A stretch of DNA of 64,000 bases, taken from the NCBI GenBank assembly GCA_977016875.1, contig CDRNST010000054.1, forward strand, positions 1,612,001-1,676,000, in the 5' to 3' direction. This DNA comes from Pavona decussata (lineage: Eukaryota). The notes under the pieces are model-generated. The model worked only from the letters and a program-made list of their open reading frames with translations. It ran no database searches and was not told the origin of the DNA. Below are positions 1-62,872 of this stretch, in pieces (the first letter of the stretch is position 1; each line of letters opens with the position of its first letter). A program made the position numbers and the translations under genes.

Positions 1-306
1 GGATCTTCTTCAACAACCACCGATGAACAGTGGAAATCCACGCTGGACTTTGTCAAATCGATCGCTGACCAATTCCCAGTGTCTGACATAGGGGCCCGCA
101 TTGGAGTGATATCCTTTGATACTACTCCAAGAGTTGGGTTTGCATTCGATGCCTTATCTGGCCCTCAGCTAAATAACTTTGAAGTCCGAAGATTGATAGA
201 CAGCGTTCCCTACGGTAATGGCCCTACCAGAATTGACCGTGCCTTGAAGCTTGCCAGCACATTCCTCTTCACACCTGAAGGCGGAGCAAGAAAGAATTCA
301 ATGAAG
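1..306 (+). CDS. VWA1 N-half exon (5' truncated by the window)
   Basis: Open frame 1 GSSSTTTDEQWKSTLDFVK...TRIDRALKLA...GGARKNSMK; donor AAG|GTATAA, phase 0. Confidence 0.9.
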
Positions 307-1053
307 GTATAAACAGTGGCCTTCTTATTTTGGAACATAGAAAGAATTTTAATCCTTAACTCAAAAAATATTGGTTGAGTTAAAATGTGTAAGCAGTCCG
401 GAATTCTGTTTTGTAAAATATCGAATAATACAGCCCCACCAAACAGCTTCGTTTTCCACAGAGACAAACATTACAATTATGTTACGATAGTTGCCATCAT
501 CATCGTTATTGTCATCATGATCATCATTGTCAATTATTTTCTTGAATAGGTTAATATATACAACTCTGAAATCAATGAATGAAATAGGAGTGAACTTAAA
601 CCAAATGGTTCGCTTTCACAATCTAATTGACACGCTTGTTTCCCAAATAACTTCTGTGAGTAATCTGTAAACAAATTATACTATTGCAAAACAAGGGCAT
701 CGTGAGCAATTACTAGACCTAGAAATGTTCTTACTCACAGGAATTCACAATGAGACGTCTCCGATTTGAGCTTACGGAATAGGGTTGATTTCTTTGAGTA
801 AATATTTGTGAGACCTTGTTTTGTTCTTGTTGTTCAAGCAAGTGCATGCAGTCGTATTGACTTATTGTTTATGTTTGTCATGGCGACATAACAAATACGG
901 TGATTGACTGAAATCTGCTTTAGTGGTCGCTTGAGGAAGGTCGTTCCCTCCTTAAGAAAGATATTCTACTAGAATTTCAATCGTTCTTGTTTTTCCTTTA
1001 CTTTTGACTTAAAAAGTCGTAAGGACACTTAATCAAATTCCTCTTTTTTGCAG

Positions 1054-1306
1054 CTACTATTTGTAATTACTGACTCTGGACAAGCCCCCGATCAAAAGCC
1101 GTCAACACCACTTGACCAAGCTTCTCAGCCTCTGAAGGACAGAGGAGTTCAGATATATGCTCTTGCTATTGGAGGAATGGTTCCTGAAGAGAACTTACGA
1201 GACATTACCTCAAAACCACAGAACATTTTTACTCCTGCAAACTCTGTTGATGATCTACCTCAGCGTCAGCCCAGAATAGTAGATGACTGGAAAACATACT
1301 TGAGAG
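1054..1306 (+). CDS. VWA1 C-half exon
   Basis: ttttgcag|LLFVITDS...LKDRGVQIYALAIG...G|GTTAG. Confidence 0.9.
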
Positions 1307-1846
1307 GTTAGAAAAGTCATTTTGAATTTTGTAATCAGTGTAACTGAATGATTAGCTCTGTTAACCTACTGATATTTTGTCACATGTTGGAAAGAATAGG
1401 TTAAAGATGCTTGAAAGAAGTGTGTGGTACCATGATAGCTCGATTTTTAGAGAAACTAAAATTGTAATTCATTTGCTTGTATCTCTTTAGTTCAAACTTT
1501 TAAAGACTTTTGTCTGGTTATTGTTTCGGGACGTGGAAAACGAAATTGTTCCAAACATAGCACTCTTCCTTTTATGATTCAGCCACAGCATATTTATGTC
1601 TCAACTTTAAGACACATTTGGAACGATCTGTTGGCGCATGTTGTAGTTCCAATGAATGGTCCTGTGATATCAAGGGAAAACTAATGAATATGGTTCGATT
1701 GGAACAGAACATTTTGGTGATAAGGAGATAGCATGATAACAAGCTTGAAATTCATGGACATGAACATAAATGGACGGTTAGTTTTGTAAACCCATTATTC
1801 TCCCAAATTCTTGTTAGATCTCTAGTTTGTTTTCTTTCTTTTGAAG

Positions 1847-2187
1847 ATCGCTGGGCAGGTGTAGACATTGGTTTTGTAGTGGAGGCTTCAGACAATGTGA
1901 CACCAGAGCTATGGACAAACTTCCTGAACATTGTAAAGAGGACAGTAGACCGTTTCCATGTTGCGCCAAGGTCTGCAAACATTGGAATGGTCACTTTTGG
2001 AGACAGTTCCAATGTGGTGTTTAACTTCAATACTCTACCTGATGAAATACTTAACAACTTTGAGGTAAAACGACTTGTGGATAAAGCCACACTGCAGGAC
2101 GGAGCACCTAGACTCGACCGTGGTCTCAAGACAGCTTACAAGTCCGTGTTTACGGAGGAAAATGGCATGAGAAGGTGGCTGCCTAAG
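1847..2187 (+). CDS. VWA2 N-half exon
   Basis: tttgaag|DRWAGVDIGFVVEASD...GMRRWLPK|GTGTG. Confidence 0.9.
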
Positions 2188-2744
2188 GTGTGTTTTTGTG
2201 CAGTGATTTATAGTTTATTTTCAATGACGGGCAGTAACTGCCAGGGTGTTAGCACATTTTTTTGTTTCTAAAGTACACAATACTTATCTCAAGACCGTCA
2301 TACCTCCTGTTAAAGGTAAGCCTCCTATTTATAAATTCCTTAATAGACAGCTCATATCAAAACGTAGTAGTGTTCCTTCTAACACAACAACTAAGTTGGG
2401 TAAGAACCACTTCTGCATGTGTATTATTAATTTGAAAAGCATCACTTAAAAATCTTGAGATAGTGCTCTGGTTTGGCTACAAGTACCATATTTATTCATT
2501 GAAACTTTTCTAGGGACCAAAGTTTACTTCTTCTTGTCATGTGTGTTGGAAAATGCTTATGACTGTTTTTGGTTTGTTCTGTCTTTGAAATTTCACCTGT
2601 TGTCTGTCCTTCCATTTTTAAGAGTATTTACTGAATGCACATGTGTCTGGCTCACCTATGCGTTTAGAACAATGTAGACCAAAAGGCATCAAATGCCCTG
2701 TGAGATGTCCTCTCATGAGTATTTCGGATATAACTTTGTTGCAG

Positions 2745-2997
2745 CTCCTTTTCGTGATAACAGCAAGTGCACTGAGTAGTTCTCCCGGGCAATTCACACC
2801 TCTGGCCACAGCATCCCAACCTTTAAAAGACAATGGAATACAAGTTTATGTACTTGGCGTGGGACCTGATGTTGATGACCAGGAGCTGAATGATGTAGCA
2901 TCGCGTCCACAAAATGTTTACAGGGAGTCTGCTGGCCGCTTAGCAAACTTTGGGCCAGCACTTTGGGACAGCTGGAAAGACTACATAAGCAAAAGAG
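2745..2997 (+). CDS. VWA2 C-half exon
   Basis: ttgcag|LLFVIT...LKDNGIQVYVLGVG...KR G|GTAAA. Confidence 0.9.
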
Positions 2998-5476: not shown

Positions 5477-5817
5477 GTCGGTATCCTGCAGCAGATGTAG
5501 CATTCCTCCTGGGTTCATCCCCACGCACAACACCCCAGACGTGGACTGCATTCCAGACCTTTGCAAAGACAGTGGTAGACACATTAGGTGCATCTCCAGA
5601 TGGCGTGCGTTACAGTGCAGTTGCATTTAACTCCGAACCTCGTGTCATTTTCCGGTTCAACACTCTGCAAGGACCTCAGTACACACAGGACAATGTGAAG
5701 CAACGTATTGATGAGATGAGGTATACACAAGGGGCTACTCGTATCGACAAGGCTGTGGATCTTGCAAACAACGTTTTGTTCAGACCTGAGTCTGGCGCAA
5801 GAAAAGATGTCCCACAA
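5477..5817 (+). CDS. VWA3 N-half exon
   Basis: ttcttag|RYPAADVAFLLGSS...TRIDKAV...GARKDVPQ|GTAAGT. Confidence 0.9.
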
Positions 5818-6468: not shown

Positions 6469-6733
6469 TTGGTAATTATATTGGTTGATGGGCCACAAGC
6501 TGAAGACCAGGTCCCTTACATTCCTTTATCTAAAGCATCACAGCCATTGAGGGATCGTGATATTGCTATTTATGCTGTTGGTGCATTGCCCTTCGCATCT
6601 GAGGAAGAGCTGCAAGACCTAACCTCTGACAAGGAAAGGGTATTCCTTTATCCTGTAGATGAACTTCCTAGACGTACACCACAGGTTCTCAATCAATGGT
6701 TTGACACTTGGTTAACTAGATGGCGTCCTAAAG
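6469..6733 (+). CDS. VWA3 C-half exon
   Basis: tttcag|LVIILVDG...IAIYAVG...RWRPK G|GTAAC. Confidence 0.9.
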
Positions 6734-7876: not shown

Positions 7877-8083
7877 CTCCTTCTGATACTGAGTGTAGAC
7901 AAGAATATCAAACGGCATTGCAAAACTATGTGATGGGTCGTTATGTACCACGCTGCAGACCAGATGGCAGCTATGAACCCCTTCAGTGTCGCACCTCGGT
8001 CTGTTTCTGCGTTGATAGATACGGAAAAGAGATTCCAGGGAGTCGAAAGTCTGCATTCAGCCCTCCAAACTGCCTCAAGTTTG
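7877..8083 (+). CDS. Thyroglobulin type-1 repeat 1
   Basis: C..YVPRCRPDGSYEPLQC...CFCVDRYGKEI..C; phase 1-1 exon. Confidence 0.9.
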
Positions 8084-10050: not shown

Positions 10051-10254
10051 TTGATCCACCATCTGAGTGCCAGAAAAAGTACAAGCAGGCAGTGGCCAAT
10101 CGTCTTTATACACAAGGCGGAAAAATGCCCAGGTGTATGCCAGATGGAACCTACGATGAAGTGCAGTGTTGTCCGAGTGGTTATTGCTGGTGTAGTAACA
10201 GCTCTGGATCAGTATATGGTGTAACAAGGGGATGGCCCTCATGTGCCACTGGAG
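10051..10254 (+). CDS. Thyroglobulin type-1 repeat 2 (not in ORF track)
   Basis: ttccag|DPPSECQKKYKQAVANRLYTQGGKMPRCMPDGTYDEVQCCPSGYCWCSNSSGSVYGVTRGWPSCATG|GTTTG. Confidence 0.88.
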
Positions 10255-10892: not shown

Positions 10893-11105
10893 GTAAGCCA
10901 CAGACACCTTGCCAAGAACAGTACCAAAAAGCATACTACACAGCTCCTTCTGGTGACAGGTACATTCCTCATTGTACCCCGGATGGAAAGTACTTCCCTG
11001 TACAGTGTGACGCTTCTGTTTGCTTCTGTGTGGACCAGCAGGGAACAGAAATCAAGAAGACAGCTAAGCTGCTTCCAGAATTTCCATCCTGTGATGCTAC
11101 ACCAG
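10893..11105 (+). CDS. Thyroglobulin type-1 repeat 3
   Basis: PCQEQY..YIPHCTPDGKYFPVQC...CFCVDQQG..C; G|GTAAAC donor. Confidence 0.9.
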
Positions 11106-11510: not shown

Positions 11511-11714
11511 CTCTTCCCCTGTCACCATGTCAGAGAGAAAGGTTATCAGCCACCGAGAAACATGTATTAGGACGGTGGGTTCCACAGTGCCAGGAAGATG
11601 GCTCTTACTACCCGGTCCAATGCACTACTGGCTGGGACTGTTGGTGCGTTGATGACGATGGAAGGGAAATTACTGGATCTCGAAGAAGAGGATGGCCAGA
11701 CTGTGACCCAACAG
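11511..11714 (+). CDS. Thyroglobulin type-1 repeat 4 (not in ORF track)
   Basis: ctgtag|LPLSPCQRERLSATEKHVLGRWVPQCQEDGSYYPVQCTTGWDCWCVDDDGREITGSRRRGWPDCDPT|GTAAA. Confidence 0.9.
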
Positions 11715-12447: not shown

Positions 12448-12654
12448 TAAAGAGAACTACTGAATGCCGGAATCACTTCAAAACAGCATTACTACGCCTT
12501 CTTCCTGGTCGTTTTGTCCCTCGCTGTGGAGCAGATGGCAGCTATGATCAAACACAGTGCCTTGGGTCAATTTGTCTCTGTGTTGATGAACGTGGTATTG
12601 CAATCCCAGGAACATCAAAACCACGCTTTATTAAACCAAACTGCGAATCCCAGG
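12448..12654 (+). CDS. Thyroglobulin type-1 repeat 5
   Basis: TECRNHF..FVPRCGADGSYDQTQC..CLCVDERG..C; G|GTGAG donor. Confidence 0.9.
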
Positions 12655-12774
12655 GTGAGAAAGTAGTTCATCTTTCCTGTCAGTTTTTTACATGGAATGC
12701 CTGCAGGGCATGACGTGTCTAGGTTTCGGTCGGGTTTCGTCGTAGTCACAAATCGCCACATTAATTTATGCATT

Positions 12775-13070
12775 AAAATAATTTTTCCCCTGGTAGGGAT
12801 GTATTGTTCTGATTGTCTTCAACAAAAGCGGCCCAATCAAAATCTGTTATTTGGGCTCATATCACGAGAGAGGGGACCCACTCATCCCTTCCTGTGTGAC
12901 GTCAAATCATTATTTGATTTATTCATTAAACCTTGATTAAATTCTACCCTCTCCCAGGAGGGATTTATTTTTCTGATTGTCTTGAACAAAAACAGCCCAA
13001 TCAAAATCTATTATCGGCGCGTATATCACGAGGGAGGGGACCCACTTATCTCTACCTGTGTGACGTCAAA
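12775..13070 (+). repeat. ~160-bp tandem dimer of a dispersed repeat (inverted homolog at ~52810-52950)
   Basis: Two copies of ...ctgattgtctt..caaaa.c.gcccaatcaaaatct...ggggacccac...tgtgtgacgtcaaa. Confidence 0.7.
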
Positions 13071-13910
13071 GCAAGTCATCATTTCGAAAAGTTGTTTTTG
13101 TTCAATGGCGGCCACATGTATGAATTTAAGACTTTGATCTCCCGTTTTCAGAGAGAAAACTAACCTTTTTCAAGCAGTAAATCGAAATAATAACTTCTAG
13201 GTAGTACTCGACAGTTGAAACAGTAGAAATTGAGAGAGTTCACAGCAAAGAAACTCCGCTTTAAAAAACAGATCGAATGATCAACGCGAAGGATTAGAGC
13301 TAGAGGAGGCCAGACCAGTTCAGCGGGGTCATGACGTTATTGCATAGTTATCTCTGGTATGATGCCTAGTAACACAACGATAAGTATCACGCAATATATC
13401 TGAATAAAACCATTCAGACAATTATTTCAAATGCCAAGGGAGGATAGTTTTTAAATATCTGCGAAACATACAATGGGGAATAATTGGGGCTACATTAAGC
13501 ATTCCGTGTAATGCCATTAGAGGGGCATCTTGTTTTACATACAATTACGCTTCAGTGAGGTACACTTAACTCTTACAGGATCATAAAATTATTTGAATTG
13601 GATGTTGGCCATTCCTTGAGATAACACTGTAAACCCAGGCTTTATGTTCATTCAAAGGAGTTTTCAGGGAATGCTTGTTTTCAATTTGGGTTATTATTGA
13701 GGAAAGTTTTGCTTTTCACAGTTGGTGGGGTTTGACAATAAAAATCAGCTTAAGACTTGGACTTATATCATCTTAGATTTGCGTGGAGCATATTTCTAGT
13801 GGGGCTCATAATGAAACCTTATGGTGTACCGCAAAAGTGGTTGCATTCTACCTACAAAACATCGTTTGCTATTTGTCTGAGGATTTCCTGTGCTGTTGTA
13901 TTACCTGTAG

Positions 13911-14120
13911 GATGGAGATTATCAACATGCCAGCGCCACTACCAAGAAGCATCAAGATTTTACTCTACAGGACGGTTTACTCCCAAGTGCCATGCAGATG
14001 GTCGTTACGAGGAGGTCCAGTGTTATGGCAGTAGATGCTTTTGCGTTGGTAGTGATGGTCTGGATTCAGGTGTCAATGAAACTGTGCTGCCTCAAACTCC
14101 AAGCTGTCCACCTTCTCGCG
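13911..14120 (+). CDS. Thyroglobulin type-1 repeat 6
   Basis: STCQRHY..FTPKCHADGRYEEVQC..CFCVGSDG..C; G|GTTAG donor. Confidence 0.9.
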
Positions 14121-14743
14121 GTTAGGACCTTCTCCTATTTATGCCTGTTCTAACGAGATAGTTTTATCTAAAGAATGTACATTGTCCCCATATCGCCAGA
14201 TCTCGAATCTTGAAATGACCAGCCTCAGATTGAGATAGGTGGTCCCTTAAGGCAGAGGATTGCTAATCAGGCAATCTAGCAACAGCAGTTAAGATGTCTC
14301 CCTATGGCTTAAAGTTTGTGTGCATACTGATGATGCGCGCCTCAGTAATGTGCGTGCGGAAGCTGATGTAAGCTCATGCAAAACAGCGAACAAGTCAACA
14401 ACACAGCTCTTAAATTGTCAAATTAAATCTATATTATTTAATATAGAGAAAATTTAATCCGCAGAGGTCATGTAAATGGTTAGCCTTGTACTCAACAGTA
14501 TAGTTGCATTAGTGCCTCCTTTTGCCCTCGTTTGTGTTTTTGCAACATTAGCTTACAGGGCAGTAGCCTCACGTGTGGCTTCAATGCAATCTGATTTTAA
14601 AAATGCTTTGCTTGAACAGAGACCATTAGCCATACCTCCTGGTCTTAAGAGTCACGATACAATCCCAACAATTCTGTAGTTGTATCCCTTGAAGCTGTCG
14701 TACTTCCTGGCACATATATATTTATTTTGAGCAATTCTTCCAG

Positions 14744-14947
14744 ATCCAGAAACTCCAAGAACACCATGTGAAATACAACGCAGTGCAGCACTTCGAGGAT
14801 CAACAGATGAATTTGCACCATTTTGTAGACCTGATGGATCATTTGATCCAGTTCAGTGTAAAGGTCTGATGTGTTACTGTGTAGACAGCAATGGAAGAGC
14901 CATTAAGGGAACGAACACACCCCGTCCAACTCGACCAGACTGTGATG
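14744..14947 (+). CDS. Thyroglobulin type-1 repeat 7 (not in ORF track)
   Basis: ttccag|PETPRTPCEIQRSAALRGSTDEFAPFCRPDGSFDPVQCKGLMCYCVDSNGRAIKGTNTPRPTRPDCD|GTAAGT. Confidence 0.9.
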
Positions 14948-15368
14948 GTAAGTGATAGGTGATTGTAAGTGCTGTGCAATGAACGGCCCTCTATATAAAC
15001 ATACATCTAGGCCCAGTCTTAGGACAGGCCAAACTAGGGCTATTAAAGTTATACGAAATTTGTTTGAATGTGATTGGACGTCCATCACATCGGAGACCAT
15101 TCCACTTCTGATTTCTGTAATGTTTTGGAGCCAGTCTGTGTCAGAGAAACGTTGTTGCCAACAGTTTTTTTTATTCCACTTCATCCCTTCTCACCAAAAT
15201 TGCAATGCAACGGAAATAGTTACCTCACAAGACCTTGTTTTCTGAAGTAAAACTTCAAAGCATGATTAATCACTTATAACTTTTATCTGGCAGTACACTA
15301 TAGCTGCGGTCAGCGGATGACTTTATAAAAAATACGCCAGTAATCAGTTGGTTTTTCATTTTATTCAG

Positions 15369-15572
15369 GTCCCAGTCCTACTGCATGCCAGAAGACGTAC
15401 TTAGAAGCTCTGAAACAATACCGCCCAGGTCGATTCATTCCACGCTGTACACGCGATGGCAGATTTGAGCCTATCCAATTGAATGGACCGGATGCGTACT
15501 GTGTGGACAATGCTGGAAAAGAAATACCGGGAACAAGAGTGGCAAGGCCAGTAAGACCTAACTGTGTTGCGG
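15369..15572 (+). CDS. Thyroglobulin type-1 repeat 8, 4-Cys variant (not in ORF track)
   Basis: ttcag|PSPTACQKTYLEALKQYRPGRFIPRCTRDGRFEPIQLNGPDAYCVDNAGKEIPGTRVARPVRPNCVA|GTATGT. Confidence 0.88.
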
Positions 15573-16125
15573 GTATGTAGCCATCTCTCCAATCTCTTGT
15601 TGGGACTCGGCTTGATTCAAAAATTTTGTACAGCCATTCCCGTTTTTGTGAGCTATTAGTCCTTCCTCATAAATGGGCTTACTCGATTTATGCCAGTCTG
15701 TCAAGTGGCTCATTGGTAACTTTATCAATGACTAGATTAACATGTAAGGTAGTGGTCATTATTCTGAATGTCTCTTGCATGTTTTGCAACTTCTTTATAT
15801 ACATGAACGTTTATCAAGTTAGACTTCCCAGTTTAAAGTTAAAATTAAAGAAATACTAAAAGAATCACCCAGTCCCAGAAAAATATTTATCTTTTTGAGA
15901 CTTGAACAGGCTATAGAGTAGGACCATTGCATTCACCACTAGAAAAAGCTGAGGTACTTCACGTTCAAATGGAATTACCAAGTGCCTTAGCTTTACATCT
16001 AGGAACGTTAGCATCCAACCATTTATGCAGATCCAACGCGACGTTACAATGGCACACGTTTATGTTGGTCTTCAAGGCATCATTAGTTATAGGTAGTCTT
16101 CATGATAATTATTGTTGTTTTTTAG

Positions 16126-16287
16126 ATAAACCTGGTCGCTGCCCAGTGCCTTGGAAAGAATTAGATGCAGTCTGTGATTTGAAAATAGGAGATGAATGCG
16201 AACGTGACAATGACTGTAAAGATAACGACAAGTGTTGTTTCAATGGCTGCCGAAAAGACTGTGCAAAAGTTCCAAGTGAAAAATACG
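16126..16287 (+). CDS. WAP (four-disulfide core) domain exon
   Basis: KPGRCP..C..C..DNDC....KCCFNGC..C: 8 Cys in WAP spacing; phase 1-1. Confidence 0.88.
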
Positions 16288-16395
16288 GTAAATTTTGTAA
16301 CTTACTATTTGTTTTAATTCATGATTCATGCTCTGGAGATGACGGTTCTAATTTCCGCATACCCTATCAACTCCATCATTAGCCAAAGTAAAGAA

Positions 16396-16550
16396 GTAAA
16401 CATGTTTCGGATGAAACTTCATTCACCTTTAGTACAGAACCCGCTAGTGAGTGTGATATAAGCTATATTGTATACTTTCTGAATTTGTATCACACCCACT
16501 AGCGGGTTCTATACTGAAGATGTATGAAGTTTCATCTGAAACATGTTTAC
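16396..16550. repeat. Long intronic hairpin (~60-bp arms)
   Basis: gtaaacatgtttcggatgaaacttcat..cagaacccgctagtg.gtgtgata / tatcacacccactagcgggttct..atgaagtttcatctgaaacatgtttac. Confidence 0.85.
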
Positions 16551-17054
16551 CATAAAAAAGTCACAAACTTCATAAACGTTAGTTGGAATACTAACAGGAT
16601 CGCAGTATAAGCTGTCAGCATTTCATTTGTTTCACTTGCCACTAGTTAAAAAACATCCAAGCCTCCTATTTTCCCACTGCTGCTCAGTGGATTTTCCAAA
16701 AACTAAGTAACCCCCTAAAAAAAGGTCGATTGTTACGAAGATCTCGGCAAGCAGACTGACCTCCATCAACACCCGTGCACGTTTGCTTTTGTGTGCTATA
16801 CCAATGTTATTTTCGTTTGTAGTGCATAAACATTTCAAGGTCGAACCAAAGTTACTATGCTTTGAAAGTTGTGTACTAACTGCGAGGATCTTTCTTCTAT
16901 TTGATGATGCCTAATGCTGCCCAGAAATTTCACACGTTTGCTTACAAAATACCTTTGGAACAAATGCACCAACAATCTCAATTGTATTTTTTTAAATGTA
17001 CTGGAAGGAATTTTTGTGAACGTAAATGTTAATCTACACATTTTTTGGTAACAG

Positions 17055-17398
17055 GGGAGGAATGTCCAATTCCTATGGATGCCACTATCATAATTGACTC
17101 GTCTGGATGTGTAAGTCGCCGCAATTGGGTTCACTTGCTGAACTTTGTCCAAACTCTGGTCAGTGTCTTTAACGTGTCACCAGCTGGAGGTCGTATTGCC
17201 CTAATACAATACAGCACTGATGCCAATGTGGTTCTCAAATTCAACACATTAACTGGAAACCTTCTCAATGGTGCAGAGGTCACCAGGCAGATAGGTCGCC
17301 TACAGTGTCTGAGAGGTTCTAGACGAGCTGATAAAGGTTTGGAACTAGCTGACAAGGAAGTGCTGACTCCTGCAGCTGGCTTGAGAAATATCACCAGG
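17055..17398 (+). CDS. VWA4 N-half exon (DSSGC type)
   Basis: EECPIPMDATIIIDSSGC...LQCLRGSRRAD...; AGG|GTAAGA. Confidence 0.9.
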
Positions 17399-17575
17399 GT
17401 AAGAGCATTAACTGCTGTAAGAGATGTAACTCCTTGCTGAGATGGCTTCAAAACATTAACTATTAACCTTTAGTTCAAGATTTAAGTACCACATTTAAGC
17501 TATAGTGTTTCTGTTCTTTAGTGAAAGGCTGTAATTATCTTAGCAATATGCAGGATATTTTTGTCACATGAACCT

Positions 17576-17700
17576 AGTCTCCTATAGCTTAGTGGTAGAG
17601 CATCCGAACTAGTAATCAAAAGGTTTTAGGTTCGACTCCTTATAGAAGCACTCCGATTTTCTTTTTCCTATTATGCCTGCGTCACTCACTGAATAATACA
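17576..17700 (+). mobile_element. tRNA-derived SINE
   Basis: A-box TAGCTTAGTGG and B-box GGTTCGACTCC followed by a non-tRNA tail; degenerate antisense copy at ~27610-27680. Confidence 0.7.
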
Positions 17701-18125
17701 TTATTCTCAACAATTGTCTTTGCAAAAACGTTCTGGTTTAGTAATGTATCTTTGAAGTGAATAGCATTAAAGTGTCATCAAAACTATTAAATAGGGGTTG
17801 AAACAGGCAGAAAACACCAGTTGGTACTCGCATTGAAAATAGTACGGCAAAGCAATGACTTTGCTTTATCACCATATCACTTCCCCATATTGCTGTATTG
17901 AGGCAATGGTGGGAAAGTCATACTAAAATTCCCATGATGACATCACCGGAAGTGATTTTCGGAGGTCGAGCACGCAATCTGATTAGAATTGCGCTAAGCA
18001 ATTCTTTTAAACCGAGACTTAACATGCAACCGTATTCCATGTGAATTTATGATAAGGTTGAACATGGTGAAAATTGAATTTTTGACCAGTTTATTGTTGA
18101 TTTTTGTCCTGTTCTCACCCCGTAG

Positions 18126-18366
18126 CCTGTTCTTGTTATCATGACTGGAAAGCAAACGACAGACCAAGGAGTGTACACGCCTCTTGATGTGGCCTCTTCT
18201 CGCCTCAAGAGTAAAGGAGCACCAGTGTTTTCCTTGGGTATAGGAGAAGACGTGGACACTTCAGAACTTGCCAGAGTTGCTTCATCACCTGATAATGTGT
18301 TTACAGTGGACTCATATGAGGACCTAGACAGCAAAGTTAAGGACATGAAGAGAGGCCTCTGTATAG
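18126..18366 (+). CDS. VWA4 C-half exon
   Basis: cgtag|PVLVIMTG...VFSLGIG...RGLCI G|GTACA. Confidence 0.9.
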
Positions 18367-19000
18367 GTACATAGTTGATTTTCCTTTTCCTTCCCGAACA
18401 CCTGTTTCGTTAAATTAAATCCAAACAATGTTTTCTGTTCTAGTTTAAACTTTTACATCATCTGATTTTGGTTTAGTTTTTAATGGTCCACCTTCATTAG
18501 TATTAATTCTGGTTTTTGCTTTTCCTTCATGATTCTACATTAAAATTGATATCTTTAATTTTGACCTGTTTTTCCCAGTGTCTTAATTTTTTTATTTCCA
18601 TGTTGTTCTATAAGTAAATGGTCCCAAAATTTTGTCCAGTCTCTGGTTACATTGTATACAAATTTATGTTGTGTGATATTATTGAAATATTATTGAAAAA
18701 GATATTGTCTGGACCACATTGTGGTTAAAGTTGCATTTTCAACTCAGGCACGCATTATGACTCAACTTGTGCAAAAATGGCAAATATTTGTTCTTTGCGC
18801 CACATGTACTCTGTCTTCTGAATTGACTTTAACCCCCTCCTTCTTTAGGAAACATTTAAAATTTTGTTCGCCTGCACTAACGTGGTGGTTATCCTTTATG
18901 AATTGCAAATACTGCATCAGAGTCTGAATGAGTTCAGGGCCTTGATAATAATCTCTTAAGTCTTAGTACCATTTCCTTATGTAGAAAATTTCCTTCTCAG

Positions 19001-19084
19001 GAATACCGCTTGATACAACTGCATCACCTACACCAACTCCAGCTCCAACACCAACACCAACACCATCAGCCACATTAACAACAG
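19001..19084 (+). CDS. Pro/Thr-rich linker exon
   Basis: ttctcag|IPLDTTASPTPTPAPTPTPTPSATLTT G|GTAAAC. Confidence 0.85.
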
Positions 19085-43364: not shown

Positions 43365-44703
43365 TTCTCAAACTCATTAATAATTCATCAATTTACAAAC
43401 CAATCAGGATACGCCAATTTGGCCACATGTGTGTGTTTAGAAACCCCGATGAAACACTGGACAGAGGTTTTTCCCCTATACTTTGATGAAATATCAAACC
43501 CTAGAGCTTGATAAAATGTCAAACCCCACTGATGGAGAATTTATCCTAATTTAAATGTTAATGCCACAACACCAACATGAATTGGCAAGCTTTATTAATA
43601 CTTAAAAGACAATTACAGAATGTCCAAAACCAACTGCCACTGTGATATTTCTATGTTCACCCCCGTGAAGACCGAATAACTTTCCGTTGTAATAATATGC
43701 AAAGATTTAGCTGAATGACAACCCAAAAGTCCCATTTCCCAGAACTTGCTTTCTTCTTCCTCTGTTACCGGCAACTTTTCCGCCTTCTTATTCTGAAGAG
43801 CGACTCGTTCCCTCGTTGCGTCCTTCATTTCAGCATCAAGCACTGTTCGGAAAATAACAAACCTAGAAAATAGAAACAAAATTCATTGTAGTACTACCAA
43901 GAACTTTAACTGCGTAATTTAAACACTATGCGCGTGCTTTGATTGAAATCACCAAGTCATACCTCTTGTCAGATGTACTCAGTGGATTTATATCCTCACC
44001 CGGTTTCTTCTCTGCGAGAAAGCGACGAATACCAGCAACAATGCCGTACAAGGTTCTCGGAGGGTAACGTTCTTTTGAGGGCTTTGCGACCTCTTGGACA
44101 AATTTCGTAAGCCAATAATTCACAGACAACGCATTCATCTCCACCAGAGGTGTTTCCAACGACTCAACTTGATGAAAATCGTAGCTTTTGAATAAACCAA
44201 CGAACTCGACAATGGGTACTTTTACCAGACGCTGCCTTTGCCACTCCTCGAAGATTCCAGAGGCCCATTTATTTTTGTGCTGAATGGACTTGGGTACCGC
44301 GTTTTTAACCAGAATAACCTCTTCTTCGGCTGTTTTGGCTTCCCGAAAATGTGACAACGCCATATCTTTTTAAGAATGACCGAATTGAGACCAAGGGATG
44401 TATATGTGTTCCACTTTAAACAATGACGGTCTTCAGGGACTTGTGACACTGCTAAAATATTTGACAACAAAGGCCAATAACTACTGAAAAACAACACTAA
44501 AAAAAGTAATTTATATTCCGCGTACGATGCCAAAATCGGTGAGATTTTTTTCATTGTTCTTGGTTACTGATGCACGATTGAGAAGCAATTTCAAAAACTC
44601 GTGCTTCGTGTTTCATCGGGGTTTCCAAACACTCGAAAACAATAAATTTTCTCGTGTTTGGAAACCCCGATGAAACACTCGCACTCGTTTTTGGAATACT
44701 ACA
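43365..44703 (-). mobile_element. Crypton-type element (truncated DUF3504/YR ORF with a spliceosomal intron)
   Basis: ORF 44363-43963 joined through a GT-AG intron (43962-43863) to RFVIFRTVLDAEMK..EEESKFWEMGLLG; absent from the paralogous site at ~48316; 25-bp perfect hairpin arms at 44608-44678. Confidence 0.8.
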
Positions 44704-45350: not shown

Positions 45351-45474
45351 ACACCATCGACAACACCAACAGCAGTACCAACCACTTCAGGAACACCAAC
45401 ACCAACCCTAGTACCAACAACGTTACCAACACCAACACCAACAGCAGAACCAGCAACTTTACCAGCACCAACAA
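45351..45474 (+). pseudogene. PT linker exon that has lost its 3' splice acceptor
   Basis: Near-identical to 48953-49090 but lacks 20 nt (attcagttccgagcacatca) that include the AG; donor A|GTAAGT intact. Confidence 0.7.
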
Positions 45475-46267: not shown

Positions 46268-46608
46268 CCTGTAAGGCTACGGTAGATTTGGCATTCATTG
46301 TGGATTCGTCAGGAAGTATTGGTCGTAGAAGATGGCCGCAGATGTTAAATTTCGTGAAAGGCGTCATTAACAAATTCAATGTTGGACCAGATGGCACTCG
46401 TGTAGCTGTGATTGCCTACAGTACGAGTCCGAAAGTTGAATTCACCTTTAATACCCTGTCTGGTGCAGACATTACAGAAGAGGAGTATGGAAAACTCATT
46501 GATCGCATACGTCTTCAGAGAGGCTTTACTTACATTGACAAAGCTCTGAAAATGGCTGATGAGCAATTGTTTATTACAAGTGCTGGAATGAGGCCTGCAG
46601 TTCCAAAG
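46268..46608 (+). CDS. VWA13 N-half exon (MIDAS DSSGS)
   Basis: gtgcag|CKATVDLAFIVDSSGS...GFTYIDKAL...; AAG|GTATGA. Confidence 0.9.
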
Positions 46609-47720: not shown

Positions 47721-47958
47721 GTTGCAATTGTGATAACTGATGGCGAACAGACAGAAAAAGGAGGTTTTACGCCATTGGATGTGGCATCTCAAGGCCTCAA
47801 AGACAAGGGAGTGGCAGTGTACTCTTTGGGTATTGGTGGGCATGTACGTGTTGAGCAGTTGCGGCAAATGGCAAGTTCTGATGACTACGTATTTAATGCT
47901 GCTGGATTTGATGAGCTTGGGGAGGTCATCGTTCCGATTGTGGAAAAGTCTTGTCCAA
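47721..47958 (+). CDS. VWA13 C-half exon
   Basis: aaacag|VAIVITDG...KSCP A|GTAAGG. Confidence 0.9.
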
Positions 47959-48952: not shown

Positions 48953-49090
48953 TTCCGAGCACATCAACACCATCGCCAACACCAACAGCAGTACCAACCA
49001 CTTCAGGAACACCAACACCAACCCTAGTACCAACAACGTTACCAACACCAACACCAACAGCAGAACCAGCAACTTTACCAGCACCAACAA
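48953..49090 (+). CDS. Pro/Thr-rich linker exon (138 nt)
   Basis: attcag|PSTSTPSPTPTAVPTTSGTPTPTLVPTTLPTPTPTAEPATLPAPT A|GTAAGT. Confidence 0.85.
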
Positions 49091-49887: not shown

Positions 49888-50228
49888 CCTGTAAGGCTAC
49901 GATAGATTTGGCATTCATTGTGGATTCGTCAGGAAGTATTGCTCGTAGAAGATGGCCACAGCTGTTAAATTTCGTGAAAGGCGTCATTAGTAAATTCAAT
50001 GTTGGACCAGATGGCACTCGTGTAGCTGTGATTGCCTACAGTACAGGTCCAAAAGTTGAGTTCACCTTCAATACCCTGTCTGGTGCAGACGTTACAGAAG
50101 AGGAGTATGGAAAACTCATCGATCGCATACGTCTTCAGAGAGGCTTTACTTACATTGACAAAGCTCTGAAAATGGCTGATAAGCAATTGTTTATTACAAG
50201 TGCTGGAATGAGGCCTGCAGTTTCAAAG
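49888..50228 (+). CDS. VWA14 N-half exon
   Basis: Paralog of VWA13a. Confidence 0.9.
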
Positions 50229-50244
50229 GTATGAAATAAGAATA

Positions 50245-51477: not shown

Positions 51478-51715
51478 GTTGCAATTGTGATAACTGATGG
51501 CGAACAGACAGAAAAAGGGGGTTTTACTCCATTGGATGTGGCATCTCAAGGCCTCAAAGACAAGGGAGTGGCAGTGTACTCCTTGGGTATTGGTAGGCGT
51601 GCACGTGTTGAGCAGCTGCAGCAAATGGCAAGTTCTGATGACTACGTGTTTAATGCTGCTGGATTTGATGAGCTTGGGGAGGTCATTGTTCCGATTGTGA
51701 AAAAGTCTTGTCCAA
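51478..51715 (+). CDS. VWA14 C-half exon
   Basis: Paralog of VWA13b. Confidence 0.9.
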
Positions 51716-56059: not shown

Positions 56060-56402
56060 ATGAAACATGCCCGATCCCTATGAACACAACCTTCATTGTT
56101 GATGCATCTGTTTGTGATGACCCTGGAAACTGGAATCGTGTGCTGAAGTTTGTTCAAACTTAAGTCACCTTTTACGATGTGTCACCATCTTTTGGACGCA
56201 TTGCCTTGGTCACATTCAGCACTGATGCCAAAGTGGACCTGAAGTTCAACACATTAACTGGAAATCTTCTGAATGGTGAAGAAGTCAACAGACGAGTTGG
56301 TCTCCTTCAATGCCAGGGTGATTCAAGGCGAATTGACAAAGCATTAGATCTGGCAGACAAGGAAGTGTTTCTCAGGCTGGTGGAATGAGAGGTGTATCAA
56401 GG
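56060..56402 (+). pseudogene. VWA15 N-half pseudo-exon
   Basis: Homologous to VWA7a but has TTA>TAA stop at 56161-56163 and a 1-nt deletion near 56370 (343 vs 344 nt); splice sites intact. Confidence 0.85.
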
Positions 56403-56533: not shown

Positions 56534-56777
56534 CCTGTATTTGTAATCACAACTGGAAAGCAAACAATAGACAAAGGACCATACACTCCTCTTGATGAGG
56601 CCTCGTCTCGCCTCCAGAATAAAGGATCAGCCGTGTTTGTGTTGGGTATAGGAGAAGACGCTGATCCTTCCGAACTGCAGCAGATTGCTTCTGGGCCCAA
56701 AAATGTGTTTAAAGTGGATTCATTTGAGGACTTGGATGTCAAATCTAATGAATATAATAGAGGCATTTGCTATCTAG
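56534..56777 (+). CDS. VWA15 C-half exon (open frame, partner exon dead)
   Basis: ttgtag|PVFVITTG...RGICYL G|GTATT; 244 nt like its paralogs. Confidence 0.65.
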
Positions 56778-57009: not shown

Positions 57010-60000
57010 TTAACTCGTGACTGCGACATGCGCAATGAACGAGTTATAGTAGTGAGGGTAAATGTCACTCGCTCGATCTGTCGTAAACCTTATATACATC
57101 TTATATATTAGTCTACGTTTGGTGCATTACGGGACAAAAAATGTAAAATCAACGCAAGGAATAACTTATTCTTAAAAGAAAATAGCTAGTAGGTGTGTTG
57201 TCTACTAAATCCTATTTAGCGAAACTAAGGGGCAACTTATCAGGACGGATATTGTCCAAAAGTTCGACTTCGATAGGCGGAACTGCTCGTTTCAGCAAAC
57301 GTCAAACGCAAGCATGAAAAACTTTAAAGGAGGTTACCCTAAAAATCCGAGGAAATGACATGAGGGAAAAAAGAAGTATCCGTAACTTACATTACGGACC
57401 AAGAAAACGAGGTTAGTAAGATATTTATTATATCTCAGAGGCTAATCCGGCGCGCGGCACAGAAAACTAGTTGAAGTCAAGAGGAACGGTCAACTGCCAC
57501 GAATGATTGGCGTGTGTCAAATCCCAAAACACGAATTAATCTTCTTGGCTGCTTGCACACGATACAACCATTGCAAAAATCAAGTGTACAAAAACCAACA
57601 GTTTCACAAGTTTAATTCACATGAACAACATGAAGACTTACAAGAAAATAGTCTTCGAAATAGTCTTTTGTAAACACTTGAAGAAAGAATTATCCGACGA
57701 AAACTGCTGGGAAAAGTGAGGAACTTACAGCACTCAAAATATTTGTTTACTTGCAAACTAAAAACAAAAAGGCGGTGTTTTCTACAGCGCATGTCAAAAT
57801 GTGAAGGAAGTACAACGGAAAAGTTTTTCTTGCTGCTGCCATCCAGCCTTGGTCGTTTCGCTACATTTTCTTCAGTGCTGCCGGCTGGATCTCGCGGATG
57901 AACAGTAAATACGCAGTTTGAAATTGATCCAATGCTTGCCGACGCGAAGAATGAATGGTGCGGCATCGCTTGAACGCTAAAACTGCTCTGGTTGGAAACT
58001 GAACACTGCAACGAACTGCTGCTATGGTTGAAAGGAAAAACTGGCTCGTGAATGCTTGAACTTGGAAGAGCAACTTGCTGTCGAAGCGTATCCGACATTT
58101 GTCATTGATGAGCGAGGGAGGCCGACTTGTACGAGCTTAAACTTTGTAAATTCTTGCGACCGCTTAGCTGTGTAACGAAATTTTCTGGAATATCAGCGTC
58201 AAGTAAACGAGAGATGCTTGTTTTTCGTACCGAATGGTTGGAAAGTTTCCTTCCACAGGCTTGCAGGCCAGCTTTTTTGGCTGCTTTTGGCAAGAATTGG
58301 CCGATTTGGTTTTTGCCGCGAGGCGACACCTTGTACCAGGTGGATTTAGTACGCCAAGCATTGTGGTTTATGGTTAGAAAGAAAGGGGAAGTTGGGGTTT
58401 TCGCTTCTTCGGTGGCTTTCGAAATTCTTGAAATATCGGACTGGGGACTGCTCTGTTCCCGTGGCAAATATTTTCGGATTAAAATGTCGCTGGTGTGAAC
58501 CTTCCAATCCTTGGCGAGTCTTGCTCCCTCTTTCTGCCAGCCAAACCAAGATTTCTCTGCCTGTTTCAGGATCAATTTGCAGCTCCAAATCGCCCCAGCA
58601 AAGTTTCCGGCTTTTGTCCCTGGCTCTGAATCCAAAGTGGAGTGAAAAGAAGCACCATAATGTGCGCTGGAGCGCTTCGGGATTATGGCAACCAAAAGCG
58701 CCGCTCTCAAACAACTTTTCTTCCTCTTCGCTTGTCAATTCACGGGAAGCGTTTGGCTTGTTTCCTCGCCCTTGTTTCACAAGATTTTTTTCTTTTGGCG
58801 GCCAATACTTCTCTGGCACGACAAAACTCTTCGTCTTTAAGGATGTTGAAAGACAGCTTTAACTCTTTCAGGCGATGCTGAATGCTTCTTTGAAAACTTG
58901 AAAGGCTGCCTGGCTCGTACTCGCCACCATTTTGTTTACGGACCTCTTTAAAAAAATTTCCAAGCAGTTTGTCAAGAGCATCAGCAGGTACGTTTTTCAA
59001 ATTACTGAAAGCTTCCATTGCTCTGCTCCTTACAAAATGTTTCAATTTTTTCCGTTCGTAATATGTCTTCTTCACCGTGTTTTCAGATTTTTCAGAGGAA
59101 ATAAAATCGTCCAATTCTTGACTCAAGCCCGGTTCGTCTTGCTCATCCTTCACCATTTGTCGCTGCCCTTCCTCTAAAAGCTGAAGGAAGTCAATTTGAA
59201 AGTTTGGCATACTTTCTTCGGGGTTCTTTTGGTTTTCTCTGTTTGTTCGCAACTCTTTCAAGTAATATATCAAATTTTTCTTCACGAGACATGTTGGCGA
59301 CAAAATGTTGCACCAAATTTTCAAATTTAGCGGGCCTGACAGACGAATACGGCCCGCAAAATTGACCAAACAGAGCGCGTGTACTAAGTGAGCAATATAA
59401 TAAGATCGATTCACCAGAACAAACGTAAACACTGAAAATTTGCATTCACATAGCGATTGAACCACAGAGAGTCTACTGAGTACCGCAACGCTTGACGCAA
59501 TTCTATATTTACGTTCACTTGGATAAAGCCAAAACAGCAAGTTTAGCAAGATTGAAAGCTTCCTCCGATGTTATAAAACGCTGAAAGAAGCCGTCGTTTG
59601 AATGTAGTAAGGAATTACCATGCTGAAAACGTCGGCAAGATTTAGGTCACGCGTTAGGCAACCAAAATCGTTCACCTGTATTAAGTTTCATTCGGCAAGA
59701 ACACGATGCGAGGAAAGAAAACACGGAGGTTCATGGAAGGAAAATTAAACGCTTTTTTGTCGATTGGCAACCAAGTAAAACCATCTAAAAAACGTACACT
59801 TCCACCTTTGCCGTTGCTTCGTGTATCGAAAGGAATCAGAGTGCGTGTGTAATTTAATTGTCTGCGAGATAAGCAAATAACTTTATTCATAATGCATTCC
59901 CGCAATGCGACATGGCGTCCACGAATCCTTGTAGCGTAGTTTCATGCGAGTAATGTTTTACGGTTACCACTATTCACTTTTGCATTCATGTGGTGGCTCA

Positions 60001-60456: not shown

Positions 60457-60504
60457 TTCCAGCAACCCCAGCCCCAACAACAACACCAGTGCCAACAACG
60501 CCAG
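60457..60504 (+). CDS. Pro/Thr-rich linker exon
   Basis: tttcag|PATPAPTTTPVPTTP G|GTAAC. Confidence 0.82.
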
Positions 60505-60701
60505 GTAACTAACGTTCACGTTTTTGTGAAGCTCTCATTTTGAGATAGTATCGGCATCCTGTTTCGATTAATTGGATCTTATAAATTTCGAATCCCGTTG
60601 AGTATATAAAGCCAGGCTTGCATGGAACAAAGTAGTCTATAGAATTTGTTATTTTCGTGTATCAAATAGTAACGTTTTGGACATATTTTCTTTACCAACA
60701 G

Positions 60702-61045
60702 AAGAAGTATGCCCGATCCCTATGGATACTACTTTTGTTATCGACTCATCTGTCTGTGATGATTCCAACAACTGGAATCGTGTGCTGAAGTTTGTTCAAA
60801 CTTTGGTCACGTATTTCGATGTGTCACCTTCTGTTGGACGCATTGCCTTAATCCCATTCGGCACTGATGCCACAGTAGTACTCAAGTTCAACACACTAAC
60901 TGGAAACCTTCTAAATGGTGAAGAAGTCAACAGACGAGTTGGTCTCCTGCAGTGCCAGGGTGGTTCAAGGCGAATTGACAAAGCATTAGATCTGGCAGAC
61001 CAGGAAGTGTTAACTTCTGCTGGTGGAATGAGAGGTGTATCAAGG
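60702..61045 (+). CDS. VWA16 N-half exon (DSSVC type)
   Basis: aacag|EEVCPIPMDTTFVIDSSVC...GVSR|GTAAGG. Confidence 0.9.
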
Positions 61046-62297
61046 GTAAGGGAATTCTGATTGAATTTCTATTTTTTTTTTCAAAGACATCACTTCTTAG
61101 TCAGTCTAATTATCTTGAAAAGCGAAGTTTTTTATTCTTTTTAGTTTTATAACTGAACCTGACTCGAACCTGCTTGTCATTAAAGGCTCACATTCACCGA
61201 AAAGGCCTTGCGCGCATATGTTATTGCGATCTGATTGGTTAGATTAAAGAATCCACCCTATTTCTCTCCAGTCTGTCCGATTTATTTGAATTTGTTTGTG
61301 GCTACAAAAAATATTTACTCTCCAAAATGATGGAATTGTCTGTAGCTCTTTATGTAAAAACCTCACCAATAGAAAGTTGATGATTTGGTCCGCATTTCTG
61401 ACCGCCACTCAGCCGGGGATGCGGCGGAGCTCTCTCGAGAGCACTCGACAGTGTATAAAGGAAAGAAGATAGGCCTGCGTGACTCCCACTTGCGTGTTTT
61501 AGCCATGTTCAGTTATAGTCCTAGTCATTATAGAAGTTGACAAGAAGAGAAATTGTATGGGGTGGTTGCTTATTATCACTTTCCCAAATAGCGCTGATAA
61601 CGTTTATTGCATATTATGGTTTATCATGACACTGATATTTCTACCTTTCATAGTATACAAGTGATATGATATTCTTAATTTGCGTGTTTATGAATCTGGG
61701 GCTAACTAGGTAAATGAATATTTTAATTCAACTGCATTTGACCATAAAAACAAACCAAGGCAACCTTCCTGAGAAACCATATAGACGGTTTGTTAAATAT
61801 CTGTTGGGCACTCTATTTACATGCATCAGGCGAATCCTGAATCACTTCGAACTGATCAAACTTACTTGCCAAGGTGAGATATCCATTTAAATCAGAAATA
61901 TCAGTACAAAAGATGCATGCTGCGAGGCGTCAAGCTTCCTGTTTCTTGCCTTTAAAATACAAGCTACGCGAAGAGTCTCTTGACAAGGATAAACTTCGGG
62001 TAAACTAAACAACATTGTCAAGTGCGCGATGTCACGTAGCAGCGACCGACGAAGTATTGAAGAGGAAAAAGTCACATTTTGCCAATACAGTTTCAAAATA
62101 ATTCAAGGCAACAATAACGTGAAATGGAAGAATAAAATTTCTACAAGCATATGAACTTATCATCCTCAAGGTGGCTCCAGAGCAAATGAGTTTTAAACGA
62201 TAACCCGATTGGGGACATCTTCGTGTTAAAGGAACTTCAAACACAACGCCTGCGGTGCGCAAAGCCTTTTAGCAATGAATTCTCTAATTTTCTGAAT

Positions 62298-62549
62298 CGT
62301 GATCGTGGTCTCTCCTTTCGTTTCGAAAGTAAGTGTTCAGCAGTCAGTCTGTGGTTGTGTTACTAGGTCTGTGGCGTTTCTTGTGTGAGGCGAAATCAAT
62401 CTTGGATTTGCATGCACGGCCACATATGGTGCACATGTGTGCAAGAGAAGATGGAGGCAGAGAGGCGGTTGCCTTTCGTCGAGCACGTCTTTCCTGTAGT
62501 TCCGCAACTCTGATTTCCTTTAATGTGTGGACAGCCTTGTGACAACTGG
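62298..62549 (-). mobile_element. 5'-truncated non-LTR retrotransposon 3' end (RTE-like)
   Basis: C-terminal Zn finger CTICGRACKSKIDFASHKKRH, short UTR ending in a CACGAT repeat, 8-bp flanking direct repeat TTCTGAAT (62290-62297, 62550-62557). Confidence 0.75.
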
Positions 62550-62628
62550 TTCTGAATAATGAATTGATCAACATGGTTCTATTAAAATGACTCAATTTTG
62601 ATTTCTTATTCTCATTTTTCTTTTTTAG

Positions 62629-62872
62629 CCTGTTTTGGTAATTACAACAGGAAGGCAAACAACAGGCCAGGGAGCCTACACGCCCCTTGATGAGGCGTCC
62701 ACTCGCCTCCAGAGTAAAGGATCAGCCGTGTTCGTGTTGGGTATAGGAAATGACGTTGACCCCTCAGAACTGAACCAAATTGCTGCTGGACCTAAAAATG
62801 TGTTTACAGTGGACTCGTTTGAGGACTTGGAAGAAAAAGCAAATGAAATCAAGAAAGGCATCTGTGTACTAG
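62629..62872 (+). CDS. VWA16 C-half exon
   Basis: ttttag|PVLVITTG...KGICVL G|GTAATT. Confidence 0.9.

Follow-up and report, generated by a model that had tools for sequence, protein, structure and literature searches.

A giant thyroglobulin type-1 and VWA mosaic gene in the stony coral Pavona decussata, probably encoding a secreted matrix protein conserved in hexacorallians

Proteins with thyroglobulin type-1 (TY) repeats have been described from the extracellular matrix of cnidarians. The matrisome of Nematostella lists NvThyr-1, NvThyr-2 and NvThyr-3, termed 'Thyroglobin repeat proteins', as core-matrisome glycoproteins of isolated mesoglea (PMC12549020). These proteins were detected by mass spectrometry in decellularised mesoglea; the best hit of NvThyr-1 was WFIKKN2 and that of NvThyr-2 and NvThyr-3 was equistatin, and thyroglobulin-repeat proteins were among the protease-inhibitor classes that rise in adult Nematostella (PMC12549020). 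Uncharacterised TY and VWA proteins have also been found in proteomics of sea-anemone mucus, nematocysts and tissue (PMC11857728). The subject of this work is a stretch of 64,000 nucleotides from the stony coral Pavona decussata, here called the window (NCBI GenBank assembly GCA_977016875.1, contig CDRNST010000054.1 or C54, positions 1,612,001-1,676,000, forward strand), in which both domain types occur together. The window probably represents the middle-to-3' part of a single gene, conserved among hexacorallians, that encodes a giant secreted modular matrix protein, most plausibly of the mesoglea. Literature searches found no described coral protein with this architecture. To our knowledge, there are no functional data on TY-repeat proteins in cnidarian matrix biology.

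Like the predicted product of the coral gene, the three NvThyr proteins are secreted TY-repeat proteins. A WAP-Kazal-Kunitz N-terminus of the coral kind would yield a best hit to WFIKKN2, which makes NvThyr-1 (NV2.14419) a plausible orthologue. Equistatin, a thyropin of Actinia equina, shares the TY fold (PF00086) with its six Cys and CWCV motif and is the source of the 'Equistatin' label on coral models. It is a soluble inhibitor of about 22 kDa with three TYs, whereas the coral gene has 57 TYs set among VWA domains. WFIKKN1/2 carry WAP, follistatin/Kazal and Kunitz domains in the same order as the coral N-terminus, a resemblance confined to one end. They are proteins of about 570 residues with an Ig, two Kunitz and an NTR domain, whereas the coral protein is about 20 times longer and has one Kunitz domain. 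The list of open reading frames (ORFs) showed no Ig or NTR exon between the coral WAP, Kazal and Kunitz exons, and identity with WFIKKN was rejected on these grounds of content and length.

Long VWA arrays combined with WAP or Kunitz domains are found, as in the coral gene, in collagen VI alpha3, alpha5 and alpha6, in the Nematostella WAP/vWFA protein NV2.11346 and in Hydra Hcol3. This group has no TY arrays, and the 252 kb scanned around the coral locus held no Gly-X-Y run of at least six in any frame; collagen VI was rejected because there is no such triple helix. Papilin, agrin and nidogen were rejected since the Pfam scan of the window gave no TSP1 plus papilin cassette, no LamG/SEA and no NIDO plus G2F. 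A preliminary description, made from the letters of the window alone, had set the gene apart from collagen VI, papilin, agrin and nidogen, and rightly so. A gel-forming mucin was likewise rejected: the same scan of the window gave no VWD-C8-TIL and no cystine knot, and the Pro/Thr exons are just 15-46 residues long.

Extent and module content of the gene

The region scanned comprised the window, which is free of N, together with 180 kb upstream and 8 kb downstream (C54:1,432,001-1,684,043; 252 kb); the contig ends 8,043 nt beyond the window. Six hidden Markov models (HMMs) built from the locus were used for the upstream part, and the Pfam ORF scan covered the window. All database searches were run per exon, and the joined frame was computed solely for phase and length. 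Positions below are those of the window, with negative numbers upstream of it.

The gene spans from about 1,508,141 on C54 to the contig end at 1,684,043 (window -103,860 to beyond +72,043), which is at least 176 kb. It holds 57 TY, 31 VWA, 4 WAP, 3 Kazal and 1 Kunitz domains, all on the plus strand, and only the N-half of the thirty-first VWA precedes the contig end. With SP for the signal peptide, Kaz for Kazal, Kun for Kunitz and PT for Pro/Thr linkers, the module order is SP-WAP-Kaz-Kun-WAP-WAP-VWA-TY6-VWA7-TY3-VWA2-TY8-VWA-TY31-VWA6-TY8-WAP-VWA-(PT-Kaz-VWA)2-(PT-VWA)n, continuing past the contig end. The domain exons alone amount to 30,608 nt or 10,203 residues, and with the remaining exons the product would have at least about 10,500. 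This supports the earlier view of a very large, modular, secreted-type mosaic protein gene. Its statement that no terminus lies within the 64 kb also held, the predicted start being about 104 kb upstream and the gene passing the contig end 8 kb downstream.

At the 5' end, Pfam recognised exons for Kazal (-90.2 kb), Kunitz (-87.9 kb) and two WAP domains (-85.7 and -84.7 kb). One more WAP exon, at -97,410 to -97,237, has a clear orthologue in the first WAP of the anemone locus described below. From -180 kb to -97.4 kb the HMM scan gave no domain exon. A candidate first exon begins with an ATG at -103,860, encodes MRPVVATLACCSFLIGVSG with a hydrophobic leader of 19 residues and ends in a GTAAGT donor in phase 1. 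The WAP exon at -97,410 has an acceptor in this same phase, so that the two fit; the signal-peptide exon is a prediction.

The TYs are well preserved, with six Cys kept in 52 of the 57 and invariant Cys columns in the alignment; CWC[VST] is found in 38 and C[YFL]C[VT] in 18. A full DxSxS start of the MIDAS (metal ion-dependent adhesion site) motif is present in 9 of 31 VWAs, the array type described below has DxSxC, and five to seven VWAs are without the motif. The Kunitz module (-87,878 to -87,639) has Thr at P1, after the second Cys, which is unusual for a trypsin-type inhibitor.

The end of C54 (window 71180-72043) is a very young high-copy repeat, with copies 95-99% identical on more than 40 contigs, and the assembly breaks inside the gene because of it. 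On contigs C473, C306 and C251, VWA exons are 86-93% identical to the array type of the window. Two VWA types alternate about 8 times at C473:6856-83369 (minus strand), five VWA units with a period of 1.83 kb lie at C251:910858-936508 (minus strand), and C306:2394-76050 (plus strand) holds a VWA array with about 27 TY exons. These contigs hold the missing 3' part of the gene or, alternatively, paralogues of it. They are not haplotigs of the window, since its 7.5-26.5 kb part has no second copy in the assembly; for the same reason, an assembly duplicate as explanation of the window was rejected. About 115 TY matches were found genome-wide, half of which belong to the giant gene. Other, smaller TY arrays are located at C15:2877453-2894655 (minus), C486:1400781-1404987 (minus) and C54:1001300-1006952 (plus).

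Conserved module order and young VWA copies

The same gene has been found in sea anemones. In Actinostola, the HMM scan of JAUJYZ010000702.1 gave WAP-Kaz-Kun-WAP-WAP-VWA-TY6-VWA-TY3-VWA2-TY8-VWA-TY6+, with VWAs split into N and C halves as in the coral. When modules were compared one by one with BLAST, 19 of the 23 Actinostola TYs matched best the coral TY of equal ordinal, most of them reciprocally, against a chance expectation of about 0.4 (57 coral TYs). The VWA blocks correspond likewise: the first, third and fourth are positional 1:1 orthologues, whereas the second has one copy in Actinostola and seven in the coral. The orthologue is represented in public data by the hypothetical protein QZH41_008038 (KAK3737699.1), an annotated model of 1,307 residues that skips most exons.

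In Nematostella, the locus DS469592.1:235657-264241, found via the protein fragment P0089, reads Kaz-Kun-WAP-WAP-VWA followed by about 31 TYs. Their best coral matches run in order: TY01-03, 05, 10-11, 13-14, 16-23, 26, 28 and 30-31. Within the 28 kb examined only the first VWA is present and VWA blocks 2-4 are absent, and the locus is compact, with about 0.5 kb per module, unlike the coral gene. The 2007 Nematostella models of the gene are pieces of 64-215 residues.

In the coral Porites evermanni, CALNXI010000707.1 carries a model of 6,838 residues followed on the same strand by a VWFA model of 840 residues (P0195). The same VWA types occur in the same order in the 3' part, on both sides of the model split, with differing copy numbers. 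Exon DNA is 72-78% identical to the window, and P0195 has 75-80% amino acid identity to the exons at window 46268 and 66993. With collinear module order and reciprocal best matches by module, the Actinostola and Nematostella loci and the P. decussata gene behave as one hexacorallian orthologue group. The presence of this gene in anemones, with its modules in the same order, shows that it is old and conserved, not freely shuffled.

Protein searches brought up fewer relatives. A profile of 56 TY exons was searched against 1.84 billion representative proteins, and the top matches were fish thyroglobulin-like, nidogen-2 and saxiphilin-like proteins. The most TY stretches in one protein were 26, in a fish thyroglobulin-like protein, and only 1 of the top 150 matches combined VWA and TY, namely the Actinostola model. 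The profile search returned no full-length orthologue, an absence that is not firm since the 6,838-residue Porites model was missed too. A homology search with P0195 gave only distant VWA proteins. The TY region of the crinoid protein P0058, used as a query toward TY proteins of 2,800-8,900 residues, matched only itself. The Nematostella 'thyroglobulin isoform X2' (P0193) and the Stylophora 'Equistatin' (P0194) were rejected as orthologues; their architecture is collinear with each other but different, and they belong to a separate gene. This second conserved anthozoan TY-rich gene reads (WAP-Kun-Kun)-TY13-17-VWA-Kun-TY-WAP-TY6-Kun-TY.

The TY and VWA parts of the gene appear to evolve at different rates. 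Coral TYs are about 39% identical to one another and 45-67% identical to their positional orthologues in anemones, so that the order of TYs is ancient and fixed. VWA block 2, by comparison, has 7 copies in P. decussata, 1 in Actinostola and 0 in Nematostella. Judging from these alignments, the gene varies in its VWA content and not in its TY array. The N-terminal two thirds, whose order is shared module by module with Actinostola and Nematostella, are fixed and not swappable, with young tandem duplication seen only in the C-terminal VWA-linker array. This array lies at 28.0-37.3 kb and consists of five units of 1.78 kb and a sixth N-half. It was measured by alignment, as Tandem Repeats Finder gave nothing because the period exceeds 500. 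Its exons are 96-99% identical; intron identity is 90-96% within units 1-4 and 73% between these and unit 5. Ratios of nonsynonymous to synonymous differences (pN/pS) between tandem VWA copies were 0.03-0.5. The units are young duplicates under purifying selection, and they fit unequal crossover. Sequence comparison therefore indicates evolution at two speeds, with TY order frozen since the anemone-coral split and VWA blocks, chiefly the C-terminal array, growing by tandem duplication.

Exons of the window and their support in RNA

The window contains 54 plus-strand exons, which encode 16 VWA domains (N and C halves), 8 TYs, 1 WAP, 2 Kazal domains and 11 Pro/Thr linkers. Searches by tblastn with window exons and then by HMM gave 16 VWA N-halves, 16 C-halves, 8 TY, 2 Kazal and 1 WAP, and none on the minus strand. 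Pfam recognised VWA, Thyroglobulin_1, WAP and Kazal_2 on representative exons (ten stop-to-stop ORFs) and no family in the 81 other plus-strand ORFs of at least 60 residues. The N-halves cover positions 3-106 of the Pfam VWA model and the C-halves 105-169, together the whole domain; Thyroglobulin_1 scored 61.2 and 34 bits against a gathering cut-off of 20.6. Chaining 52 of the 54 exons gave an open frame of 3,918 residues without a stop, in line with the inventory and the size of about 4,000 residues given in the preliminary description. Its count of 16 VWAs stood as well, although one of them is dead and 15 are intact. An AG/GT pair was found at every domain exon, where modules are phase 1-1, VWA N-halves 1->0 and VWA C-halves 0->1. 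The phase-1 module borders and the phase-0 split of the VWAs, both noticed earlier, were thus borne out at each domain exon and at the RNA joints. The Pro/Thr-rich linkers are also phase 1-1 and lie between VWA modules. A few exon boundaries were set by homology.

The first VWA is number 14 of the locus. Its N-half extends from -34, upstream of the window, to 306 (Pfam VWA 1.1e-12; HMM; GT donor, ending in phase 0) and its C-half lies at 1054-1306 (Pfam VWA). Two VWAs recognised by HMM follow, at 1826-2187 (3e-43) with 2745-2997 and at 5477-5817 with 6469-6733. The TY exons are TY50 (7877-8083; Pfam Thyroglobulin_1 6.5e-17), TY51 (10051-10254; Pfam Thyroglobulin_1) and, by HMM, TY52 (10893-11105), TY53 (11511-11714), TY54 (12448-12654), TY55 (13911-14120) and TY56 (14744-14947), the last of which is joined to the next exon in RNA contigs of runs X1, X5 and X9. 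TY57 (15369-15572) and the WAP exon (16126-16287; Pfam WAP 2.1e-9) have RNA joints on both sides. The VWA behind them has an N-half of 344 nt (17055-17398) and a C-half of 241 nt (18126-18366), both with Pfam VWA matches and RNA joints. A linker with 74% P/T/S (19001-19084) leads to the first follistatin-like/Kazal exon (19192-19401; Pfam Kazal_2), whose acceptor was taken from sequence (AG at 19190-19191) and which is present in RNA contigs.

The next VWA has a full DxSxS motif in its N-half (20067-20401; HMM, X1 record 2); its C-half (22046-22283; HMM) and a linker (22898-22954) have lengths that fit X1 record 2. A linker fused with the second follistatin-like/Kazal exon (23697-23951; Pfam Kazal_2) is followed by a copy of the 20067 N-half with 87% amino acid identity (24365-24699; tblastn, HMM and phase chain), a C-half (25952-26183) and a linker (26729-26779). 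From here on, VWA halves were identified by HMM, the array N-halves of units 1-5 also by alignment and that of unit 1 also by Pfam VWA, and all but the pair at 56 kb by the phase chain as well. N-half, C-half and linker lie at 28044-28387, 28502-28745 and 29378-29422 in tandem unit 1, at 29829-30172, 30287-30530 and 31169-31213 in unit 2, at 31610-31953, 32068-32311 and 32945-32989 in unit 3, at 33386-33729, 33844-34087 and 34720-34764 in unit 4, and at 35167-35510, 35625-35868 and 36492-36536 in unit 5. The sixth array-type N-half (36927-37270) is separated by an intron of 2.9 kb from a C-half at 40215-40449.

Downstream of the array, a linker at 45373-45474 has an uncertain acceptor (45301, 45304 or 45373). 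An N-half with full DxSxS (46268-46608), 75% identical in amino acids to P0195, is followed by its C-half (47721-47958; alternative acceptor 47673) and a linker (48953-49090). Its copy, again with full DxSxS, is at 49888-50228, with a C-half at 51478-51715 (alternative acceptor 51430). The dead N-half (56060-56364; HMM and sequence) carries an in-frame stop and lacks about 39 nt at its 3' end; its partner C-half (56534-56777) is intact, and the frame survives skipping of both. A linker (60457-60504), an N-half (60702-61045) and a C-half (62629-62872) close the series. Introns also hold foreign elements. On the minus strand, 57604-59549 contains four ORFs of 157-269 residues with QRICH1/DUF3504 and weak Phage_integrase (tyrosine-recombinase) matches, a Crypton-like element, and 43926-44363 contains a related QRICH1 fragment. 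Interspersed repeats at about 12685-13540, 21175-21467 and 24837-25622 have dozens of copies on other contigs, with 73-97% identity.

Parts of the interval 14,700-20,500 were found in 19 public runs, and RNA-type runs hold about 0.1-0.2 of its words, the share expected for exons only. Contigs of four RNA runs from four studies were aligned, and joints were seen in X1, X5 and X9, from three studies, which together back nine to ten junctions. GT..AG joints were found at 14947/15369, 15572/16126, 16287/17055, 17398/18126 and 18366/19001, and the linker is also joined to the Kazal exon that starts at 19192. One transcript joins TY56-TY57-WAP-VWA-linker-Kazal, in X1 record 1 (6,941 nt) and X9 record 16 (2,112 nt). 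The raw aligned blocks were 14743-14946 > 15368-15571 > 16125-16286 > 17054-17397 > 18125-18364 > linker > 19188-19401, with the raw joint into the linker at 18364>18999; the skipped stretches read as GT..AG after a +1/+2 shift. X5 has identical joints in shorter contigs. By the RNA-supported exon sizes of 204, 204, 162, 344 and 241 nt, the TY and WAP exons are phase 1-1 and the two VWA exons 1->0 (N-half) and 0->1 (C-half).

The linker at 19001-19084 is 84 nt long in the reference and 78 nt, one Pro-Thr pair less, in the contigs of X1 and X9. In the record the Kazal piece follows the VWA C-half after 76 letters, and since 76 is 2 + 78 - 4, the linker has 78 nt in those animals, and a gap of 6 nt at 19045 in X9 agrees with this length. 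The difference is a length polymorphism between individuals. X1 record 2 consists of a VWA N-half piece (to 20403), 337 unaligned letters and a Kazal piece with 30 mismatches. Adding 238 nt (22046-22283), 57 nt (22898-22954) and 44 nt from the start of 23697-23951, and taking off 2 over-extended letters, gives exactly 337, which confirms the chain up to the second Kazal exon with the joints 20401/22046, 22283/22898 and 22954/23697. In X1 record 1, 5,484 nt lie upstream of 14743, where the window exons sum to 3,025 nt; if collinear, this transcript would reach about 2.4 kb of mRNA past the window start. Over the tested 5.8 kb, the contigs of the four runs, which hide rare isoforms, showed no exon skipping, no alternative GT..AG joints and no recombination between N-halves and C-halves.

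Alternative readings and proposed role

Several points weigh against a single gene for a matrix protein. Continuity in one transcript has been shown for about 7 kb of mRNA only, and the remainder of the 176 kb rests on phase, the lack of terminal exons and conserved order. The 3' end is absent, as the contig stops inside a high-copy repeat. Public annotations split the orthologous loci, into 6,838 and 840 residues in P. evermanni and into 1,307, 452 and more in Actinostola. The dead VWA half-exon and the transposon insertions at 52-60 kb raise the possibility that, from about 52 kb onward, the gene is truncated or decaying or that its exons are skipped. As to function, the TY, Kazal, Kunitz and WAP folds all occur in tight-binding inhibitors of proteases, but many TY proteins do not act in this way. 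With Thr at P1 of the Kunitz module in addition, protease inhibition is offered here as a hypothesis.

Could the window belong to two or more adjacent genes of one family, with a break in the gaps at 40.5-46.2 kb or 51.7-60.4 kb? The 6,838-residue model of P. evermanni ends and the 840-residue model starts at the equivalent place, the introns at 52-60 kb are large and transposon-bearing and include the dead exon, and RNA continuity covers 14.7-23.9 kb only. The 840-residue model, however, begins with a non-signal peptide spliced straight into a VWA exon, which resembles an annotation split. Plus-strand ORFs of at least 60 residues within both gaps match no Pfam family, the phase-1 chain is open across both, and module types keep the same pattern on either side, so that separate genes are considered unlikely. 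Less probable still is decay of the C-terminal VWA-linker array, which would then form a pseudogenising and in part non-functional tail behind a functional TY-rich core. The stop and truncation at 56060-56364, the Crypton-like and other repeats inserted nearby and the DxSxC start of array-type VWAs in place of DxSxS would suit such decay. The other 30 VWA domains are all open, however, array pN/pS is well below 1 with exons better conserved than introns, and the same VWA types are kept in P. evermanni.

The preliminary description had favoured a hypervariable adhesive scaffold, built entirely from in-frame cassettes that vary freely through unequal crossover, exon skipping and recombination of VWA halves. 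In its favour are the phase symmetry of the exons, which is real, five to six young VWA-linker units in tandem, a 6-nt linker indel between individuals, a second VWA block of 7, 1 or 0 copies in coral, Actinostola and Nematostella, and related arrays of other periods on other contigs. Set against these are the TYs and the first, third and fourth VWA blocks, which are positional 1:1 orthologues between anemone and coral, the consecutive-exon joints that alone were seen in RNA contigs of three studies over the tested 5.8 kb, and the purifying selection on duplicated copies. Free variation across the gene is therefore improbable. Swappable cassettes do not describe most of the gene, and young duplicates are found in the C-terminal VWA-linker part; array duplication and the linker indel fit the proposed unequal crossover, and the RNA contigs offered nothing for skipping or half recombination. 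To call the scaffold 'undescribed' was also too strong, given the orthologous loci in Actinostola and Nematostella, the related Porites model and the NvThyr mesoglea proteins.

For the single conserved gene, secretion is argued from the predicted signal peptide and the all-extracellular domain types. Its product would be a secreted 'beads-on-a-string' glycoprotein of the extracellular matrix. From what is known of the family, the VWA domains may, like those of collagen VI and matrilins, link it to collagens, to further components of the matrix or to itself. The 57 TYs with the Kazal, Kunitz and WAP modules could act as small disulphide-rich sites, fixed in series, for binding or for protease inhibition, and through them the matrix would regulate proteases or resist them. 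The short Pro/Thr exons probably encode O-glycosylated spacers. The protein most likely resides in the mesoglea or basement matrix, by analogy with the Nematostella proteins found by mass spectrometry in isolated mesoglea; mucus or skeletal matrix would be the alternatives. A further proposal is tentative and on balance doubtful. It holds that this is the longest known thyropin array (57 TYs against a maximum of 26), whose distinct, non-redundant docking or inhibitor sites would form an ordered mesoglea 'rail' that places or silences proteases and ligands, while a lineage-specific VWA tail tunes the attachment of the coral matrix. Since each TY has kept its position and sequence since the split of anemones and stony corals, the modules would not be redundant repeats.

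This kind of gene is thus already known yet uncharacterised, through orthologous loci and partial predicted models in public data. Public models cut it into pieces of 64 to 6,838 residues, whereas the true gene codes for 10,500 residues or more, with 57 TYs that are each conserved. Matrisome and coral proteomics can use the corrected gene as a reference when mesoglea, mucus and skeleton are searched for peptides. The gene is also a clear example of evolution at two speeds, with a frozen module order beside an actively duplicating array. Finally, the Nematostella orthologue makes the role of long thyropin arrays in the matrix testable by knock-down.

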